64,000 nt of DNA from Styela clava (taxonomy: Eukaryota), in assembly GCF_964204865.1 (NCBI RefSeq), contig NC_135264.1:13888001-13952000 (forward strand), in the 5' to 3' direction. Of the stretch, positions 4,801 through 19,800 are shown in pieces. The position numbers and the translations under genes were made by a program. Under the pieces are notes generated by a model that did no database searches, was not told where the DNA came from, and was given only the letters and a program-made list of their open reading frames with translations. The first letter of the stretch is position 1; each line of letters begins with the position of its first letter.

Positions 4801-7800
4801 TAACTCTGACACCAATACGATTTAAGAGAGCTGATTTCAGTGAGTCAGTTTGGATGAGTGATTTCGAAAACTTAACAGCACCCAATCAAATAATAGTAAA
4901 GGCAGAGATAAAATCAAACAAATCACATATATACCGGTAGATGAAAATGGACCTAATCGAATAACTTTTGACATTATTTGGTGCTACTGTAGCGAGTCTA
5001 GGTCTACCACCGCATAGAGCGAGATGTAACTCAAGATAGCACTTTAGCGTGGGATTTACTTCCCTAATAAAACCCTTTGCTTCTATGCATTTAATTTAGC
5101 AATAAACACTTAATTTGTACATATTTTTGAAATAACTTGGTAATTTTAACTATTATAACGGTATACCTCATAGCCTACTGCATTTGGATAGCCAATATAT
5201 GGTAGTTGTAGTAACGCTATAGCATCCTCCCCTTAGTTTAATATTACAGGTACCAAAATCTTAGGTAATATGAATTCTAATATAATATAAGGACTAAAAA
5301 ATTAAAAAATTAAGACAATAAAACTATGTATTTATGAATGAACCAACTTCAGTAATCAAGAAAAAATCACAATATAAATAATATAATGATTTATTGTATC
5401 ACAAAATCAATCGATAAAATCTGAAAAATTTAAAATCAAATTCTCAAAAAATTGTTGTGGACTTTTCTACATACAATACACAATATAGCCAATACATTCC
5501 CATGCAGTGGACAAGCCTTCTAGGCATTGCTAAAGATTCACTACACCATGCACACATGCGACAAGTGCATTACAAAACAACCCACTACGTTATAAGAAAG
5601 TTTCTAAGTTGCTACGTTATAATGAACTTAAAAAGAGCCACCCCACGATAAGGCAAAATATTCGAATATCAAATGGAATATTGTAATGGCTTTCAGTTTC
5701 AACTATTCAAATATCTGATAACAAGTCAATTTACTTTGACATGGCACTGGAGCTAACATGAGCGAAAGCGCAAGAATTTTCGCAAGACTCTCGCAAGCAG
5801 ACCGAAAGTGAAAAATCTAATATGGTAGTCGTCATCTTTATGATATGGTGTGTCCTTGTCTAATTTCATTGTCAATTTGATATCGTTTAAATTTGTTAAA
5901 AAGAAATAGCAAGCAAATTTAAAAACAAAAGTTTGCGATCAGTTTTGAGAATAATTCAGAAACATCAACAAATTTTGCCTACCCTAGAGATAATTTTTAT
6001 CAATTCAAAATAGGCTATATCGAACTACCAGTAGAAATAACAGCATTCAGGTATAGCTTGCATTAGAATGCGCGAATGATTCATCACCAGAAGAAAAAAA
6101 CAATTTTTTTTGAATCTATTCATAAATATTTTCAGTATATGAATGCATTGTCATTGAAATGGTATTATGGAACTCCATAAGCGCTCATGTGCATGAGTAA
6201 GGATGCCTATATACGGCAATTTAAAGATCTTCAGGACTAATATTAGTTTCTGAACTGTTTTTCCGCCATGTGCTTTTTTTCAATCTTGATTTTTACCACA
6301 AGTATAATATGCAATATACAGGGTGTCCATAAAGTCCCTTTACAATTTCAATTTTGTTATGAAGTCAGTTCTCAATACATATTAACCAGGTTTGTTATTT
6401 TTTAATCAGTAATTGTTTAATAAGTATTTTTTCTTCATTTAGGAGAACCAAAACAAAATATGGTATTGATAAATTCCCTTTGCAATTTTGAAATTTTTTA
6501 AAGACTTTATAGACATCCTATATTACGATATGAAGTGTAAGAAATAGTATTTACACCAAAAATTCCCTCAGTGTCAAATGCAATTCACTGTGACAAAGAA
6601 TCATACTAACTGATAAGAATAAAACAATGTCTCACCTCCTCCTATGTGTGGATTCATGTTTGATGCAGAATTGATATTCCCTGTACTTCTTGCTTGGTTA
6701 TAAAGCATAGAGGCAGGTGTTTGTAATGAACCTCCTTGCTGATTCTGAACAAATAGAGAAAACAACGATGAAGTGACAATAATATTACGATTTTTTCAAT
6801 TAATCAAGGAGACTAGAAACAAGGTTTCTAAGATTGTGCCAGGGTAGTTTGCCCCCTCAATAGGTTGGCAAATGAAACTGAAAATTCATAAAAAATTTCG
6901 CATTTCAAGACTACTAAAGCCAAATTAACTAATCCAAATGCATACTAAATAATATTATTATACATGTAATGCAAAATATATTGTATATTAGAATATGGTC
7001 AACAAATAATTTGGAATGTATTTGAATATTAGATTCATATTAGACAACTCCTTTCAGCTTGGCCCATGCTTTGCTATGAGTTTTTATAGAAAGATGGACT
7101 GAGTAATGTAATGCTATTTCGACTTTTTTCGAGATATCTAGCTCATCAGATCTTCATTGTTATCAAAATAATTTCAAAAACACGGACCATGAAGAATGTG
7201 AATCATCATTTGAGCAGCAAATATAAATATCTGTCCGATAAATAAATACGCAATTGGGAAAACAAGATGCAGTGCAGTGGCCAAATAGTCAAAATAGAAC
7301 ATGATACAACAATTAAAAGCAAAAAAGAAATATATTATGTCAGGCCTCTTCAAATCATTCTTTAGTAAAAAAGTATTATGATGGAGAAGTCCAGAATAAA
7401 GAAATTAAATCTAATCAATTGTATCTGATATTTATACTTTTTAAATGGTCAACTTAGCAGCACAAATAGCAACATTCTGGGACAGATCGAAATGGAACAG
7501 CCAAATTACACAATACTATAAAGAGACATTTTTTTCTAAACCTTTATAACACATATGTATATTCAATACACATTCAATATTTAAATGCTCTAGTTTCAGT
7601 ATATTGTCTTTGGAATCAAAATAATTTCAATTCATATTAAAAGTCAGATTACGGTAAGTTCAACTTTCACATATATCGCTAATATAAACATAGATAAATA
7701 AATATACCTGAGGCATTTGTTTTTGCTGTTCATCATAATCAATTGGATTTGGCAAAGGAGATGGAATATGGAGATTTGTTAAATCTGAAAGAAGTCAAAT

Positions 7801-10800
7801 ATAGTTAGTTAAGCATTAATTTCTTCAATTTAAAATACCATGTATATGGAAGATTGCTCTTAAAGTGAATCAAAAAGAGGAGAGTTAATGAGAGAGTAAT
7901 TAAACCACAGACACATTGACAAATTAACTTTACAAAGTAGAAACTTAAATCAAACTGCTGATAAAGTTAAGTACATAATCAGTCTCACATCAGTCAGTGA
8001 ACCACCAACTTTTATAATATGGACATGAAACTAGCTACCAGTCAGACGTTGAAGACAATACTGTGTATGCCAGCCTTCTTTGATAGAATATTAGGCATGC
8101 ATAGTTAGCTCAATTTTTTTCTATTTCTGTATCAGGACTTTGATCATTGAAACCAATAAAAATGTGAAATTCCGACTCCTAGGTAATCCAGACTCTGGAT
8201 AATTCAAAATTTTGAGTCCGACTGAAATTGGCCAAATTGCCAAACTCTGCCTACACAGCCCTGGTCTGCTCATCAGATCTTCATTATTATCAAGATTATT
8301 TCAAAAACACGGACCATGAAGATATAAGTTCATCATTTGAGCAAATAGAAGGTGATTTTGGAATCATATTATGACAGGGCATGTATTTACTGGAGTTGGA
8401 CCAGGAGTCGTATTTTCAAACTCCCAGAGATAAAGTCGAAATCCTGAATTCCCCAAAGTCAAAATCTCAGGCATCTAACGGTGATAAAGAATGATTGAAT
8501 GATAATTTCATATGACAAAATTTTTTCAAAATTAGATCTTCTCGGAGTTCAAAGTCAAAATTTTGTACAACCAGGAGTTGATTAGAATTTTACGAATCCC
8601 AGTTTGCAATATAGAACATAATTAAAAAATAACAAACATTTCGGTTATGAACCAGTGTAAATGTACTGATATTTCACTTGTAATTCATTCCTCAATGGTC
8701 ATGTTAATTAAGCGTTTTACCTGGCAAAGATCCTGTGTTATTTCCGATCTGAGTAACGTGTGATAGTCCTGGTTGGTTGGTTGGTGTTGGTGGCATTCCT
8801 TGCCTGTGGTTTGTACATTCCGCTGTGTTTTGTAGAACACTGAAAACAAGTAAAGGAATAAGTAATCATTGCTATGATAGGCCATGGTATCAACCAGTTT
8901 TGACCAGTTTCCAAAAGTTTGGTTGAAACCAGAATTTACCGAATTCGTTAAACAATGTTATGGAATTGCTGTGGCCCAAACCCACAACGTATAATTATTG
9001 TAAGAAGGTTGCATTGGGTTAAATCCTGAGCAGAGGAACTTCAGTAAAGCTGATTCCCAACTGTTTGCTCATCAGATCTTCAATATTATCAAGTAATTTC
9101 AAAAACACGGACCATGAAGATAGAGATTCATCATTTGAGCGGATGCAGACGACTCGGGAATTCAAATAATAGAATTTCTGAGTAAATCCTTAGAGATTGT
9201 TTTGAATATGATATATCGGATATCGAATATTTGAAGTAAACATTGTTTTTGTTAACGGTTGAATGAAGTCAATTTTAATGCTTATATTAATATACTTTCA
9301 TATGAAAATATTCTAATTTATTCCCAAATCATAAATTACTTTATCAAACATATCTGAATATTTGATTCGTTTTGGACCTCCCTGGGTCCAGGTATGTCAA
9401 ATTTTGGATTAATTTCTATGAATTTCAAAAGTGTTCAAATATTCGAGTTTTTTTTAGACATCCCCGTAACTTTTTCACAGCATGTAACGCATAGTAGATT
9501 AGTAGGTATACATTTATTACAGCATTTTTCTACAAATGAGGTGCCTCATCATGGGCCATATTTTTAGCGAGTACCTTCAGGCACAATGAGAACTAGCATA
9601 GTGTATTTCCGGTCTGGACAATAGAAAGTAAATAAGTACTCCAAAGTCTGTAACTAATACTTAGGCATATTTACGTTCTGTGGTATTTAGCTGGCTTTAT
9701 CAGATTAAATATTTATTGATGACGTTTAGTTTCGTCATGATGACTATTTAAGGAGTGTCAATAACATTTATGCGCTAAAAATAGAACCCACAAACTTATT
9801 GAAATGCGCATTTTGAGCGGGAAAAAAAACTTCATAGAAAAAATTTCCACCTCACAGGCGACACGAAATGGGAAATTGTATTTAAATTTGCATTTAATAA
9901 CGATATTTGCTGAAATCGTGACATGAAATATTCCTTACCACGAAAACATACTCAAAAGTTCGTAGAAAAATAATATAAACAATAGTAAACATATGTTTAA
10001 TTATAAGTAGGCGGTAGATTCGAATTACTAGTAGAGGTTCAGATAATCTTAATTGTTTTCGTAAATTATATACTCCTTTATATCTTGAAGCTATTCTTCT
10101 TTTAATTCTATAACAGGAAATTTTTACATTTACAATCATTATTATACTCATTTTATTCCGCATTAATTAAAATTGCCAAGTGCAAAAGGAGAGGTACCGG
10201 TAGCTAAATGCATTTATCAGTTGGGGTTACACAAGACTCCCATCCTTCTGCTGTGTCATTAGTGGATTGTATGCATATATTACGAAGATGCTGTAGTAGG
10301 AAAAAAGATGACTATACTATTAAATTTATTAGGAATCTTGTTGTAAACTTCTTGTCCAAGGAAAGACGTTATAAAAATACATTTGTGTTAGTGTGCAGCA
10401 AGACTCTACACATACTATCAATACATTTATGATGTGTAAATATGAAGTCCAAATAACTCACCCCATATGAGAATCTTCACATGATTTAGGTCCATTAGGA
10501 GCTTGTAAATGTTGATGAAATTTCTCAGCATCCAGAACTGATTTAGACATCGATGTATCCATCAAATCTGAAGAAATGATCGAAATTTGTGTCAAATATA
10601 TAAATGTGTTGATGAGAATAAATGAACATAATTGCTGACCCTCCATACAGGGTTACATAAAACACTGCTTTCCAAAACTACAATACATAACACATGTTGA
10701 GATTTTAGCACTTTTCCGCCCTTCCCACCCAAGGAGAAGAAAATTGATATAATGACTTAATCACATAGTAAACCACATACTTTAATTTGGTTGTAAGTCC

Positions 10801-13800
10801 AAGTTGGATATGTAAATGCTTATTATTCCAAATACATAGACTTTTGAGTTGACTAAATTTTGTAGCCGCAAAAATGAAATTTCTAAATACTATTGTAGCA
10901 AGGTAGCCAATCCATTGGGATGTTAGTACCTGTACTGGCAATAAAATATCGTTTCATCATCGATACATATTAAGTAGATAAGATTCGGCCCTGCCAAACA
11001 CAGCTTAATATTATTAAGGCTGCTTGCTCCTTTTCATAAACATCATAAACGAAATTTTTTTTTGATGAAAGACTTGAAAAGTGTACATATGAATCCTTTT
11101 GCTAAATTGTTGTTAATTGAAAAAAATCATTTTCAACTATTGGACCAATTGATTTCAATTTTTCAGTTATCCGTACTTAATAGGCCACCATAAGACTGAT
11201 TACTCTTATTTCTTCAAATTTCTCTGAACAGTATTCATGGCCTATGGAAAGGAAACTCTTCATTTTGTTATGCTTGTCTACTGAGCTTTTGAACAAAATC
11301 TGTGCTCAGGTAATGCCTTAGAGCAGAGTTCCCAAACTTTTCCTTGTTTGTTTATCTTATTTTTGACGGACCCCCCAAGGGTCAACCTGTATTTTGTCAT
11401 CCTATTGGTAAGAGCTGAAAATGCTGCCTAATACATGTGTGTCATTACAAAAAGCAATAAAATTTTATTGTCTTCACTGACAGCAATTGATACCAGGATT
11501 CGCCCACAACCAAAAAGACCCAATGGCTTTTTGATTAGAATCAATCATTAAAAATCGATCAGACTCTTTTCATATTGTTGCGCACTCCTGGTGCAGTCAT
11601 CACGAACCCCAGTTTGGGAGACCCTGCCTTAGAGTACCAGCGTGCAACCTTCGTGTCCACATATTTTGAGCATTGCTCTCTCGTTTAAAAATAAAATTCA
11701 ATTCACCTCTTCTGGGTTGTTGAGGCATCGCTGATAAATGTCCAGGAACATTGTTGAAATTGGAGAAAGGTGCTTGCGAGTTTGGATTCATCACACTCTG
11801 ATGTAACGCTGAATCCGAGTTCGTCCTAGACAGGGCAAAACTATCGTTTCACACATGCCCATATAGAGGTTTACGGGGGTTGGGGGCGTGGTCAGGATGG
11901 AGCGGGTGGGGTCACAATAGGTTAGTAAGCAATGTATAGTTATTTTAAATTGAGGGTCAAAGGTCGAATTAAGGATAATTTTTTCATAAAAGTTTAAGAC
12001 AATTTACCACAATAAAATGTATTTATATTATAATAACACAAATGCATGTTGCGACATTTAAAATCAAAACACAGAATATGTGATCCGTTTAAAATTAGAT
12101 TAAACATGCAAATTTTTGAATTTAATAAAAAACAAAAAATTGACCAATTTTAAGTAATTATTTCACATTTGTTTTTTGAGTTGGAATAGTCATCAAATTA
12201 TGATAACATCAATTTAGTATTTGACAAAACAATTATAAATCAGCCACCAGAGTTAGTTCAAACAAAAACGTTTAACAACAAATACAAAGCATGATGTAAA
12301 TGGTTCGTGGAATTAAGACATTACGAGCAAAATTATGTGACCGAATGAATTTTGACAAGGGTGAGACAGGGTTGGTGACCAGGTGGGTGATAATTAGGGG
12401 TGCAGGTTTGCAAGCGGGTGCAGGTACGGGCAGGCAATGATGACGACACGCAAAATAGAAAGCAAAATAAAGCATGTGTAAGTTAGATTGTAAAATTAAG
12501 CAAGCAAAACAATCATATTAAACTACCAACGAACTACAAGCATTCACTACACAACTAAATAGAAGTGATGTCCAGATATGCATTTAGCATAATAAAAAAT
12601 TTGGATTAAAAAATACTGCAAATTCATATTTATAACCATGATAATGAATTTTTGAAATTTAAAAATAACCAAACTGATAAAATTGTGGTAATTTTAGAAA
12701 TTCAATAACTGTTTTGAGTTCTAGAATATTGTGCTAGACAAATTTGCAATCTTGCGACAATAATATTTTGTACGCTCTGGCATATATTCTTCAATAACAC
12801 AAAATAAATTTAGAATCGAAATCGAAAATGATGATTATCAGAAAGCTATATCAACAACCAATGACTACATAACATGAAACATTAATCTGATTTTCCGAAA
12901 GATGGTAACAGCCCTAATAATCATGCAAAAGAAACCACTGGACAAAACTGCTATAAAGCAAATAAACATTAATAAACACTATATTGATTTTCTACTACTA
13001 TTTAGTATATAGCTTTAGTATATACAGAATCACCATTCCGTCTTAATTGAACATAGATTTGGAATCAACTTGTGTAAGAAAGATACCTGTGTATAGGAAG
13101 AAAGTGAACTCTAAAGATATATTAATAGTTTTTTGCATTTTTTCAAGTTTGAAACAATTAAAAACATACTATATAATATCTAGTAAATAAGATTGTAATT
13201 TAATTGATATATTGTTTGAATTTGTCATACCTTTTTATGTTCCATTATTACAAGACACAATACTAGTAAAATCAATAAAATTGTTTACATAACGATTACT
13301 GTATAAAATAGAATTTATGGTGATTAGGAAAATGCTGAGTGCACAAATAAAGCATTTATGTATCAATATTCTATGAGAATGTGCAAACAATACTGCATAC
13401 AAGAATAGGGAAAGAATGTTCGTCAACTCTTGATCCGGTAAAAATTTATCCTATAGTTTAGTACTGCAAAATTTTTGGTCCCCTTTTTGAGAACGATTTA
13501 GCGAATTTTGTTTCAAGGAGATTCGAGCAACTTCAGTGAAAATATGTTGACAGCTAGTTTTAGCCTATTCAATCCAAGCTTTTTCATTTATTCTGAAGAA
13601 GAATTTATCCTAAAACTTTGATTTATATTTATATTCATGAGACATGACTGAGACTGCAAAATGAAAGTCAAAGTCAATTTCATTTTATAAATTATATGCA
13701 GTACTTCTAATACAAATAGCGTTATTTTAGCCAATACTTAATTAACAATCAACATTTAACAAAGCGGGCTATATTACAATTTTGTTGCAAATAGATACAT

Positions 13801-16800
13801 TTATTGAAATCAGATTTTTGAAAGATGAGATAATTTATATACCGGTTTATGCATGATAATTTCTAGTCGGAGAGAAAACTTGATAGTGAATCTTGATCCT
13901 CCTCCCCGTAAAAAAAGAGGTTTTCGTAACCAGTTGACATAATCAGTTAGTTAATTCTTCCTAATAACCATAAAAAATTACCATAAAATTTCCATTATAA
14001 TCTGGCAATTTTTTTTTTTTTCATGATTTAACACCCGATGATAAGAATAACAAATTTGAAACCTAATCTAGAATAAATTAAATTCAGTGGCATTAGGGCC
14101 AAAAAAATCCCATAAAACACAATATGGGGTATACTTGACATAGTTTTGAATTTATAGCGTGATAAAATATACACAAGTCTTAATGAATGCATTAAGCCCG
14201 TAATAATCGATAGAGTCATCCATGCATACAATACAAAAAGGGTTGAGGGCATAGATAGATAAATCATTTTTTACAAAATGGAAAAATGGAGAATTTGTGT
14301 CCCGAAAAATCACTATTTCTTATCAAGGCAATCTTTCGAAACTTAAATAAACTAGAAATTTTGTTTTATTCTTAGAGTAATGAATTGATGATATAACTCA
14401 TTTTATAAAATTTGAAATGAATAATAATGGAATTGAACGCTTTGCAGATAGATTTATTAAGCGTCTTATCCCAAACTACAATTAATTGTTACATGTAAAT
14501 ATATGCCAGTATGTTCAGATTAATAGAAATTTTGTCTTATTCGTAGAGTAGTAAATAGATGGTATAACTCATTTTATAATATTTGAAATAAATAACAATG
14601 GAATGGAACGCTTTGCATAAAGAAGTATAATCGTCTTATCCTGAAGGACAATCGTTTCATGTAAAATATATACCAGTATGTCAGACTTCAAAAATATCCA
14701 AAACACGATAACTAGAGCCCAAATTCTTTATCCTAGATATGTTAAATTGATTCAGTCCAAAACAGTTCAAGAGCATATAATCTAAATCTATTCATTTTTA
14801 ATGAAGCGTTGAATGCAAATTAGAATTTATGTAAAATCGCACATCTGGCATCATAAATGAAGGGCGTGAAATATTCACAATCAAAAAATATCATATAAAA
14901 TCTTTTTGAAACTGAAACAGTATGTGTAAGGATTATATTGTTTCTAAAATACTCTTCAGTACATTGAAAATCAACGTTGCACATAAGATATTCTGGTAGC
15001 GACAGAATTTAAATAATACATGCAAATCTAAGCTATAAACGCCAGACTCGCGATGCGCTTAGTGGTAATAAGATATGCAATGAAATCAATACATTATATG
15101 ATTGATTTCTGTCTAAAAAAAGCTAAAAGACAGTTTTTTAAACGCTTATTATAGGATATTTCTGCAACATAACGTTTACTGATTTACATTTACAGATGAG
15201 TAATTAGGGTAATTAAACAATGATATTTTAATTGTAACAAGAGCATATGAGCATTGTAACAAATTGTATATGTTACAGATGAAATTCTCTATCATAATAT
15301 ATATATATATATATATATAAATATTATATTGATATTAGTATAATACTCTTATCAAGAAATAAATGTTTTTTAAAATACCGACTGTAGAAAAATTTATTAT
15401 AGTATAAAATTCATTTTCGATAAAGTAAATTTTACGTGATGACAGATTTTTAAATCGATTGGATCACAAATCATAAATTGCATTCTTTGGACATTTATTT
15501 TTATGCCATTATATTATCAAGGCAAGGTGCTAATTTAGGAATTGGAAGCATTATAAGTATTTGAGATAAAAATAAAACATTCTATTCTTCAACTAAATCT
15601 AAACTATATTATGATTCGAATATTTTTTCGATTTAGACAGATTCAAATATTGGAGGTAGCTTTCTTTGTTTCAACCTAATGGTTGTTTAATAATATACTC
15701 CAAATCATACAACATAAAGCAGTGAGCACCTATCTTAACCGAAGTCTTTTGGGAATACGACGATGTCAAACCAGAATGGTGCACAATGTCATAAAATAAA
15801 TTAAGCTATTTGGACACCTAGATATACAGGGTGTCCATGAAGTCCCTTTACAATTTCAATTTTGTTATGAAGTCAGTTCTCAATATATCTTAACCGGGTT
15901 AGTTGTTTTTTCAATCAGTGAATGTTAAAGTATTTTTACCTTTTTAATACTTCTGTGAGGCCAAAACAATATATGAAATTGACAACTTCCCTTTGCACTT
16001 TTTAATTTTTTTTTTTTAAGAATTCATGGACGCCTTATATATATGTATGTTTATATTATAATTTTAAAACGAATAGATTATACAAAAAAACTCATTATTT
16101 GGAAATACCAGTAACTCTCACAGAATTTAGAACATACAAAAAAAATAGAACCTAGATTACGGATTATGCAGTACTTCAAATTAACTCTTTATTCGGTCAA
16201 TGACCACAAAGCAATAAAATGATGACTCATGTCACGTTGAACACATCATGTTCACATTGTTAAAACAAGTTTTCTATTTTGAATACATTTTGGAGCATAT
16301 TTTATTATAAAAAGGTTTGTTTTTATCATAAATAATATTTTAGAATATCAAAAATAAGTATTCTATTTTAAATACATTTTCCAAATCAAGTATATTATTA
16401 GAAAACCAGAGATATTCTACTCAGTGCTGCAGAAAAGTTAGGTAAATCATTATTTGATTTATTTTATTTTTAAGAATTTCTCAAAAACAAAATACTAAAT
16501 CATTCATAAATACAGAAAATAACCAATACCGAATGTATTGAAGTATTTGATCCATTTAGATATATCCAATGCAGTAACGCTTTTGTATAAATTGTTCCAT
16601 TGGCATAGTTCTGAACAAACTAGATGAAGTAATGTTGAACTCCAAAAGATGTATCTGTTTTGAACTGTGCTAAGGATGCGTAAATCTTATAATTAGGAAT
16701 ATTATCTACCTCATCAAATGTAATGTAATTAATTGACTTAATTATGATGTTTAAATGTAAGCTTAACAATGATAGATCGAACCTCTTAACATTGCAAAGA

Positions 16801-19800
16801 ATTAAATGTTATATTCCAGATCTAAATGATTAAATATTTTATAATACTTTGTTGTATTAATCAATTTGGTGTAATAAAAGTTAACTTTACAATATGAAAA
16901 GTTGATAACTTGACACAGAGAAATTTGGAAATTTCCTCAACTGAAATGTCACATAATTCTATAATAATATATGTGACAATGATATTCCTTAGGAATCCAA
17001 TTTTTGTTACTGATTTTGAATTTAGAATGGCTTAGGACTGCAGTATTGAACTGAATCATATAAGTGATGAGAACATGTTGTAACACACGTATGAATGATA
17101 CAACGTAATTTAGATGTGTAAATGCGAACGGACAAAAAAATTAACTTGATAAATTATATTTAAACTTGATTCACTTCAAAGATTAAGAAGGTAAATCTGT
17201 TTTCCAATAAAATTTTAGTGCTTTTTTATGACGATTTTGGAGAAAAAAAACAAACAACATTTAGGCTATTTGGAATCAAAATTAATTGCAATGTTGAATT
17301 TAAAAAAAAACATCTATTCTGATTCATAGACGAAACACAAACACGCTAATAGTTCCAAGTAACATTGCCAAAAAGCCTCCATACAATGTTTGAAAGAAAA
17401 TCAACAACTTCTATTGCTATCAAAGTTGCTCACATTAAAATCTATCACTAATGTCATGTTAGATACCTCAACATAAAATAATTAGGTTACACCATAATTT
17501 GGCTTTGCTAACTTTAAAAAACATTCGAAGGATTTGATATTACTTTCGAATTTAAAATAAAAACACTGACATTTAATTACTACTACAATTTATACCTGGA
17601 CAAAACTGCTAGCCATAATTTTTATGATTTTCATTATACAGTTCAACAACAAAGAAACACGAACTTAAACAAATTATTTCAAATCAAGACTGAAATTAAC
17701 ACAAGCATATTCAATTAACTCTACATACAATAATGTTATGTTGTGACTACGATTATACAACTACAAGACTAGCAAGCAGATGAAACTGATCAAATGCCAA
17801 AGCAATCTACGTATGAATACAATACAATTACTACATGTACCTTCTCCAACTGGTATCGGCAGGAGGTGACAAATAGGGCCCGCTATACGGCCCACCGGGC
17901 ATTCCTTCAACGTGACGAGGATGTCGGTTCTGAAAATCTGGCCTCCTATACGGCCTTGGACGAGAGTCAAAGCGCACTTGGTGGCGCATATGTGGTGGCT
18001 TAAAATCCTCATACATGCCCTGAAAAAAATCATAAAACAGAAAATTGAAACTATAAATCAGAATAATGTACTAGCATGCAAGTCATCTCACAAGATGCAA
18101 CCTATTGTCAACCACTTCATATAAAATTTGTGAATTGAACAGACTTTTGAACTGAATTTTCTCCCAATTTGAAGACACTATATGTTTTGTGTTGAGCATA
18201 TATCCAATTTCCACAAAGCATTACAATAATGATAATATCTGCCATTTTACAATCTATAAATTCTCTATCGAATTCTCTGATATTACTCGACCCTGTTGTT
18301 TATTTGTAACAAATATGAGCTAATTGTTAGTTACTCTAGCTGAAAAATAGTTCTAGGATCAATTTCCTGAATCTCACTCCTGCAAACTTTATAGAAGAGT
18401 ACATGCTTGGTCTGGTCTATTACAATTTGATCAATTTGAAAATGAAATCAGTAAATCGTGACTTTCCAGAACAACACCATGTTAACCAAACACAGTGATG
18501 ATGTCAATCACGCTTCATTGATTAAAAGTTAAAATGAGTTAAAACTAATTCAAGAAGATTGACCTATACCTTAACATCAAATGTCCAGTCACAAAAAAAT
18601 GAGAACTTCTGACTTACCTGTCGCATCTGCATTTCCATCGGTGGTCCAGACATTTGATTAACATTTGGTAAAGATCCTCCAAGATATGAAGGCCTGAGAA
18701 ATGCTTGTGGATGGGGATGGAGACGTTGAGGTTGCTGAAAAGCAAAGAGGTCACATGATTAAATAGTTGGGAATTGTAAAACCATGCCCAAGATCTGCAA
18801 AGACTGTGCGATATTTGCCATTATAATATTATGACATGTAGTGGTAGTCGTTTTTAAATTGCACATATTTCCAGTTTATTGTGAAGCTCTATTTCGCGTT
18901 TTTTGCAATAAATTGAGAGACCATGGCAGTCTAGTAATAAATGGATTCTAATACATTGTTATAACTGCCGTCATGAAACTTTAAAATGTCAAACAAAACA
19001 ACAAAACGAATCGTGAAAATCCTACACACTATTAAGTGCGTATTTAATAGTTATTATTAGCTGTTGAGTAGCTCCCCAGGTTCAAGTAAAATATATCTAT
19101 GAATAATGAAAAAATACAACATTTGTCCCTAAAACGAGGACATTTGGGTACAGTGGCAAATCTTCAAGATATCATTATGTTTGCAGCAATAAGTATCTCT
19201 ACGGACAATGAATGTTATGCGAACGAAACTAATTCTCATCGATCGTTTCTTGATCACAGAGGTAATTTTTTCCCTGTGGAACATATCGAAAATTTAATTG
19301 CGACATTTTAAGATTTCAGCTAATTGTTTTTGCTAAAGATCTTGAACGCTACGGTAATTTTTTTTCAAGGAATCTAACGGTGACGTTTATAGACTTCTTT
19401 TCCTTTCAGTTTATTGTGCAGTACCAATTTGAAAATTTGTGGCGATATGGAGGCTCCACACTGTCTCCTAAAGAAAGATAGGGTTTGCATCCACTGTTAT
19501 AATTATTGTCTTCAAATATAGGGGTTATTGTTACGTACTGAATGAGTTTTTTTTAGTCTATTGCACAATACCAGATTGCTGATTTTGTTACGATATGGAT
19601 AGGTACATGTTGCCAGACTGTCCTGCAAAGAAGGGGTTTGTATTCATCATTATATTGAATGTCTGAAATATAGGGGTTATTATCAGAATAAAAGAATAGT
19701 GCTATCCTGTATTGTGCGGGTATATTTCATGATTTCCATGACAATGTGCAATCCCAGAATCTTTCAGTTTTGTAAGTAGTGTAATGGGTTGAACAATTGC

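Follow-up and report, generated by a model that had tools for sequence, protein, structure and literature searches.

Distant branch points have been described for exons that are preceded by an AG exclusion zone, a long stretch without any AG that runs up to the 3' splice site. In the main text of Gooding et al. (2006; PMC1431707) two of them were verified by mutagenesis, one at position -351 ahead of PTB exon 11 (zone of 381 nt) and one at -275 ahead of GABBR1 exon 23 (zone of 288 nt), and for nPTB, whose zone measures 438 nt, a branch point was predicted at -389. The layout of a consensus branch site followed by a pyrimidine tract served to predict distant branch points, and AGs inserted in such zones become the acceptor. 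Among 67,334 human exons, 165 have a zone of at least 150 nt. In a later approach, Taggart et al. (2017; PMC5378181) mapped distal branch points from lariat reads; according to the main text these are conserved, linked to skipped exons and associated with alternative 3' splice sites, and they were proposed to slow splicing. Here we describe a stretch of 64,000 nt from the ascidian Styela clava (NC_135264.1, positions 13,888,001 to 13,952,000; hereafter the window), in which the final 680 nt of intron 3 of a minus-strand CRTC gene are entirely free of AG. With a probability of roughly 0.6, we read this stretch as an AG exclusion zone of the kind described by Gooding et al., kept by selection for the use of a branch point far upstream.

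On the plus strand CT is absent between 11841 and 12523, and this gap of 682 nt leaves the pre-mRNA of the minus strand without AG. The window holds 3046 CT in its 64,000 nt, and the runner-up among the CT gaps measures 152 nt. The gap compares with a maximum of 208 nt for any of the 12 common dinucleotides over the whole window; only the rare CC, GG, CG and GC have longer ones, of 268–537 nt. In a genome sample of 264,000 nt, made up of the window and 20 stretches of 10 kb, the second-longest stretch lacking AG or CT measures 218 nt, and the CRTC zone is the only gap of at least 300 nt.

The initial annotation had counted about 80 C residues between 11843 and 12523, none of them followed by T, and had called chance negligible. 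A recount gives 83, and the next base is A in 59 cases, G in 15, C in 9 and T in none. With the window's frequency of T after C (0.28), zero CT has P=1.4e-12. The remaining 5,317 nt of the same intron contain 214 CT, which predicts 27.4 per 680 nt and gives zero CT a probability of 1.3e-12. Over 20,000 mononucleotide shuffles, the zone averaged 23.6 CT and never had fewer than 8. The improbability of the zone remains at about 1e-3 when both strands of the 377-Mb genome are counted.

The depletion is specific for one strand and one dinucleotide. In the RNA of the zone none of the 83 G residues is preceded by A, where about 24 would be expected, and GA, with 17 occurrences, is mildly low against the same expectation. 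The edges are sharp and the flanking base composition is alike; upstream, between 12600 and 14399, the minus strand carries 5–11 AG per 200 nt. At two other acceptors of the gene the AG-free stretch measures 29 nt (exon 3) and 65 nt (exon 5), and the acceptors of three further exons look similar by eye.

Could such a stretch be a by-product without any role in splicing, be it a compositional accident, the tail of an old transposon that happens to lack AG, or the trace of a constraint on the plus strand? Some large human zones are apparently unrelated to splicing, as the main text of Gooding et al. states (PMC1431707), which gives this idea some standing. Probabilities of about 1e-12 speak against an accident. 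A search of the 377-Mb genome with the zone on either strand returned only the zone itself, even at E<=10, and a repeat search found no tandem or notable internal repeat, only short and weak pairs. In the 1.8 kb upstream, six open reading frames (ORFs) were compared with Pfam and none matched a family above its cut-off, the 3' end of the zone has no run of A, and the plus strand of the zone holds no ORF of at least 70 aa. We hold a by-product of any of these kinds to be very unlikely.

Two more specific candidates were rejected along these lines. A transposon or repeat origin does not fit the single genomic copy, the weak internal pairs and the lack of a Pfam family above cut-off among the six upstream ORFs; for the AG-free tail of a long interspersed nuclear element (LINE) in particular, many copies, an upstream reverse-transcriptase ORF and an A-rich end were looked for and none of the three was found. 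A structured or known RNA was rejected as well, with a folding z-score of -0.65 and no Rfam match at E<=1 over 11000–18100.

The host gene was identified by its domains. The ORF of exon 1 matches TORC_N with 77.8 bits (cut-off 25), and the ORF around exon 4 matches TORC_M with 36.5 bits (cut-off 27; 34.4 bits in a second search). TORC_M has a single locus in the genome, which is this gene, a CRTC coactivator. The zone had been proposed to target the exon with the main regulatory serine of CRTC. Exon 4, which starts where the zone's acceptor ends, does encode the TORC_M segment, and this we take to be the conserved 14-3-3/SIK phospho-serine segment of CRTC proteins. The intron ahead of it is 6.0 kb long. 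Skipping of exon 4, whether 134 or 119 nt are counted for it, would shift the frame and lead to a stop at the ninth codon of exon 5, as judged by eye. As an observation apart, exon 4 is polymorphic at plus-strand position 11777, where C>T is found with a depth of 92 of 210 in one RNA run (X1) and 40.5 of 71.8 in another (X6); in our reading of the codon, a serine codon, the change is synonymous.

How the intron is removed can be followed in part from RNA. Thirteen runs of one organism were available as assembled contigs, with X1, X2, X3 and X6 aligned to 11700–17699, and the contig evidence comes from the 24 of 100 loose ends and 32 of 962 pieces that were listed. The depth is 63–145 in the exon 4 bin and 0–7 in 12 neighbouring intron bins (11900–14299), a contrast by which the runs behave as RNA. 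Contigs leave the genome after 11842 in X2, with 255 loose letters, and in X3, with 15. In reverse complement these loose ends match the last letters of exon 3, which is thus joined to an exon beginning at 11840. The AG that comes first behind the zone is therefore in use as a 3' splice site.

The 30–35 nt ahead of this first AG are purine-rich, and there is no adjacent pyrimidine tract. The second AG follows a good pyrimidine tract of 15 nt. Three of the listed contigs, each 81 nt long and from X1 and X6, end at 11827, as would be expected from a fork in the assembly graph if exon 3 also joins 11825. The second AG is thus probably used as an acceptor too; a variant at 11828 would give the same contig ends. 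With the upstream acceptor the exon gains 15 nt, in frame and directly ahead of the serine motif; the choice between the two would alter the residues immediately before the CRTC phospho-serine.

The same contigs bear on a different explanation, in which an internal promoter has the zone as its outron: a transcript with its start at about 12520 would be trans-spliced to the spliced leader at the first AG and yield a CRTC protein without its CREB-binding N terminus. Trans-splicing affects about half of the genes of ascidians, and in Ciona it favours the first functional acceptor (PMC4691747, PMC11155486). The listed junctions at 11842 go to exon 3 and not to a leader. Intronic contigs of low depth extend over the zone and beyond its 5' border with unchanged depth (X1 11916–13018, X3 12109–12941), and the contigs listed for X1, X2, X3 and X6 give no sign of an exon or transcript start within it. 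A rule that outrons lack AG is not stated in the relevant passages of PMC4691747. An outron seems to us highly improbable.

The zone itself has a distinct internal anatomy (Table 1). As the initial annotation had it, the zone opens with a CTAAC (12486–12482) ahead of a U-rich tract: the motif is set 37 nt in from the 5' border, and 77% of the next 30 nt are pyrimidines. The ACTAAC near 12252 and the TACTAAC at 11921–11927 are located where they had been placed, and the two C-rich blocks (12360–12450 and 11875–11915) stand out with 44% and 61% C. Between the distal and proximal elements lies an AU-rich spacer of about 410 nt (13% C), which is equally free of AG and contains CTAAC at -413, CTGAT at -400 and CTAAT at -255. 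The branch-like YTNAY motif nearest to the acceptor is the CTGAC at -52, followed by the TACTAAC at -82; the last 40 nt hold no candidate. CTAAC occurs 3 times against 0.66 expected and CTRAY 7 times against 2.8, a mild enrichment. The suggestion of binding motifs for Rbfox and QKI fared less evenly: UGCAUG (12110–12105) and ACUAAC are present, and their counts stay within chance at window rates (UGCAUG 1 against about 0.2, ACUAAY 2 against about 0.45).

Two side observations belong to this anatomy. At the 5' border, GUAGU occurs three times within 25 nt (12550, 12537 and 12526), with 51 occurrences on the minus strand of the 64-kb window; GUAGU resembles what we take to be the branch-pairing stretch of U2 snRNA, and could presumably pair in cis with sites of the ACUAAC type. 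In C-rich block 2, an X2 contig carries a GGGT insertion at 11903–11904, within the G-rich repeat that the block forms on the plus strand, so the length of the block varies between individuals.

Table 1. Features of the AG-free zone and neighbouring CRTC exons; positions are those of the window, and distances in nt count from the exon start at 11840.
Feature	Position	Strand	Remarks
AG-free zone	11843..12523	-	CT scan of the plus strand; single copy in the genome
5' border	12524..12556	-	four UAG in 33 nt (AGs 12524, 12535, 12548, 12556), three of them inside GUAGU
CTAAC, candidate distal branch site	12482..12486	-	branch A 12483, -643
U-rich tract after distal CTAAC	12450..12481	-	12450–12486 has 51% U, 22% C
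C-rich block 1	12360..12450	-	44% C; contains CTAAT, branch A 12394 (-554)
ACTAAC, candidate branch site	12252..12257	-	branch A 12253 (-413); CTGAT next at -400
Single UGCAUG	12105..12110	-	not above chance
TACTAAC, perfect branch-site consensus	11921..11927	-	branch A 11922 (-82)
C-rich block 2	11875..11915	-	61% C, pyrimidine tract after TACTAAC; contains CTGAC, branch A 11892 (-52)
First AG, used acceptor	11841..11842	-	X2 and X3 junctions to exon 3; exon starts at 11840
Second AG, probable alternative acceptor	11826..11827	-	15 nt downstream, after UUUUGCCCUGUCU; exon start 11825
CRTC exon 3	17841..18019	-	donor GT 17840–17839
CRTC exon 4	11707..11840	-	134 nt (119 nt from second acceptor); TORC_M segment, RNA depth

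What would hold such a stretch free of AG? Once a branch has formed, the spliceosome is expected to take the first suitable AG downstream. With a distant branch in meaningful use, all intervening AGs would be wrong 3' splice sites and would be removed by selection. An absolute depletion of one dinucleotide on one strand, ending at a used acceptor, is what this first-AG rule predicts for a far branch. In the CRTC intron the distal module would consist of the CTAAC at -643, its U-rich tract and a C-rich tract reaching to about -520, and the proximal one of the TACTAAC at -82 with the C-rich tract that contains the CTGAC at -52; the AU-rich, AG-free spacer of about 410 nt would keep the two apart. 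The first AG would be used despite its missing pyrimidine tract, as scanning from an upstream branch predicts, and the second AG, 15 nt further on, would probably compete with it. Such an arrangement might slow the inclusion of exon 4 or make it repressible, or might decide which of the two acceptors is taken. We infer the use of distal sites from the AG depletion; any regulatory role would be a further step. The full scheme, with branching about 640 nt upstream, a scan to the first AG and modules that switch exon 4 inclusion or acceptor choice, is a tentative proposal, and we think it unlikely to hold in all of its parts.

The proximal motifs lead to another explanation, in which branching is confined to -82 and -52. 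The 600 nt further upstream would then form a pyrimidine-rich platform for splicing regulators, from which AGs are excluded because each of them, amid the many branch-like motifs and pyrimidine tracts, would create a cryptic acceptor or pseudo-exon. The perfect TACTAAC with its 61% C tract is in line with this, as is a clear enrichment of CACCC (5 against about 0.3 expected) and CCC (17 against about 4.7), together with 27 YTNAY motifs over the scanned stretch. In the central 411 nt, A and U prevail and C makes up 13%; this part does not make an obvious platform and is AG-free all the same. UCUU motifs of the PTB type, of which the zone has two, are not enriched. A cryptic acceptor would furthermore require an upstream branch, so this idea merges into that of distant branching and differs from it only in degree. 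We consider a pure platform improbable.

Compared with the exons described by Gooding et al., the CRTC locus shows the same sequence layout. Members of the class are recognised by an AG-free run of at least 100–150 nt that leads up to a 3' splice site in use; here the run is 680 nt long and ends at the acceptor joined to exon 3. Close to the 5' end of the zone there is a consensus branch site with an adjacent pyrimidine tract, branch-like motifs are found further inside, and the last 40 nt contain no branch candidate, although the sites at -52 and -82 are still far nearer than -643. Skipping would shift the frame for CRTC exon 4, as it does for PTB exon 11. The locus differs from these cases in its ascidian host, in the perfect TACTAAC that is also present at -82, and in being known from sequence and RNA contigs alone. 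Its 680 nt are about 1.5 times the longest zone in the main text of Gooding et al. (438 nt; PMC1431707). The literature covered on AG exclusion zones and distal branch points contained no longer zone in its main texts.

Other known systems resemble the locus in part. In alpha-tropomyosin exon 3 and the alpha-actinin SM exon, branch site and tract are likewise far upstream with regulatory sequence in between (main texts of PMC1431707 and PMC5378181). Both exons belong to mutually exclusive pairs, whereas no paired exon is seen at CRTC exon 4. Their zones are shorter than about 200 nt. The introns of Taggart et al. share with this one the coexistence of distal branch sites and sites in the expected zone, which are candidates at CRTC; in the main text of that study 'distal' is used for a distance of over 60 nt, and everything beyond 100 nt upstream is binned at -100, while the CRTC candidate at -643 is predicted. 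Taken by its layout, the CRTC zone would be an unusually long case of a known class with a plausible mechanism.

Several observations weigh against a zone kept by selection for distant branching. The TACTAAC at -82 and the CTGAC at -52 might by themselves be enough for this acceptor, so the case for the distal sites is carried entirely by the AG depletion. The RNA runs, as assembled contigs, are unable to show lariats. The fold of the zone is no stabler than that of shuffled sequences (z -0.65, with 5 of 20 shuffles equal), and no structure is thus predicted that would bring the distal branch near the acceptor. Variation within the species is in keeping with selection, to a limited degree: over about 607 nt of the zone an X1 contig shows 7 substitutions, which is about 1% of sites differing between individuals, and none of these 7 substitutions or of 3 indels listed creates an AG, contexts being read by eye. 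The chance that 7 substitutions all miss an AG is about 0.36, and the number is too small for a test of selection. In favour of selection, 276 of the 2040 possible point changes in the zone would create an AG, and with about 1% of sites varying the AG-free state would be expected to decay without selection.

The remaining points of this kind come from relatives. The matches of the representative, word and metagenome searches yielded no orthologous intron 3 from a close relative. A metagenome scan with the exon-1 ORF gave 36 loci, 4 of which contain the phospho-site motif; two of these (L054 and L057) look like spliced transcripts and two (L049 and L058) are genomic. In L049 (7793) and L058 (13216), which belong to distant animals, the phospho-site segment (...RR/xxSDSAL...) is not interrupted by an intron, and over 2,560 nt scanned no AG-free gap is longer than 96 or 112 nt. 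Having neither intron nor zone, these two loci indicate that intron and zone are not ancient. To judge from these sequences, the position of the intron may be a peculiarity of this lineage, and the result neither supports nor refutes selection within ascidians.

The other searches yielded mostly exon 1. A word search with its ORF found 641 TORC_N fragments; in P0003–P0006 the exon-1 peptide is identical or nearly identical to that of the window. As a side observation, P0003–P0006 and P0122–P0126 represent at least four ENA and Logan assemblies with an identical or nearly identical exon-1 peptide and a differing intron read-through; these are probably related ascidians, some with contigs of 0.15–2.8 Mb. 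Another of the 36 metagenome loci (L024) has an identical exon-1 peptide with 89% identity over 108 nt; it matches the window only over exon 1 and contains no later exon. Against 1.84 billion representatives the exon-1 peptide had one match, a repeat protein of 1527 aa that was judged spurious by eye. Exon 4 gave no candidates in the word search, and its ORF no loci in the metagenome scan.

If the site at -643 is used, its distance to the acceptor would be the longest in the literature covered (the main texts of Gooding et al. 2006 and Taggart et al. 2017), and the intron would be a natural substrate to probe how far the AG search can reach during splicing's second step. An unusual splicing layout would then be tied to the exon in which a conserved CREB coactivator has its kinase-controlled switch. 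The ascidian host would allow minigenes to be electroporated into embryos.

The rest of intron 3 is less exceptional. The zone had been described as free of repeats, and no dispersed repeat was found inside it; one lies elsewhere in the same intron, at 15809–16055. This element of about 230 nt has 2,617 candidates in the genome at first look, and 40 scored copies are about 80–88% alike. The contig depth over it is 5,000–12,000 in all four RNA runs, which indicates that the repeat family is abundant in transcripts.

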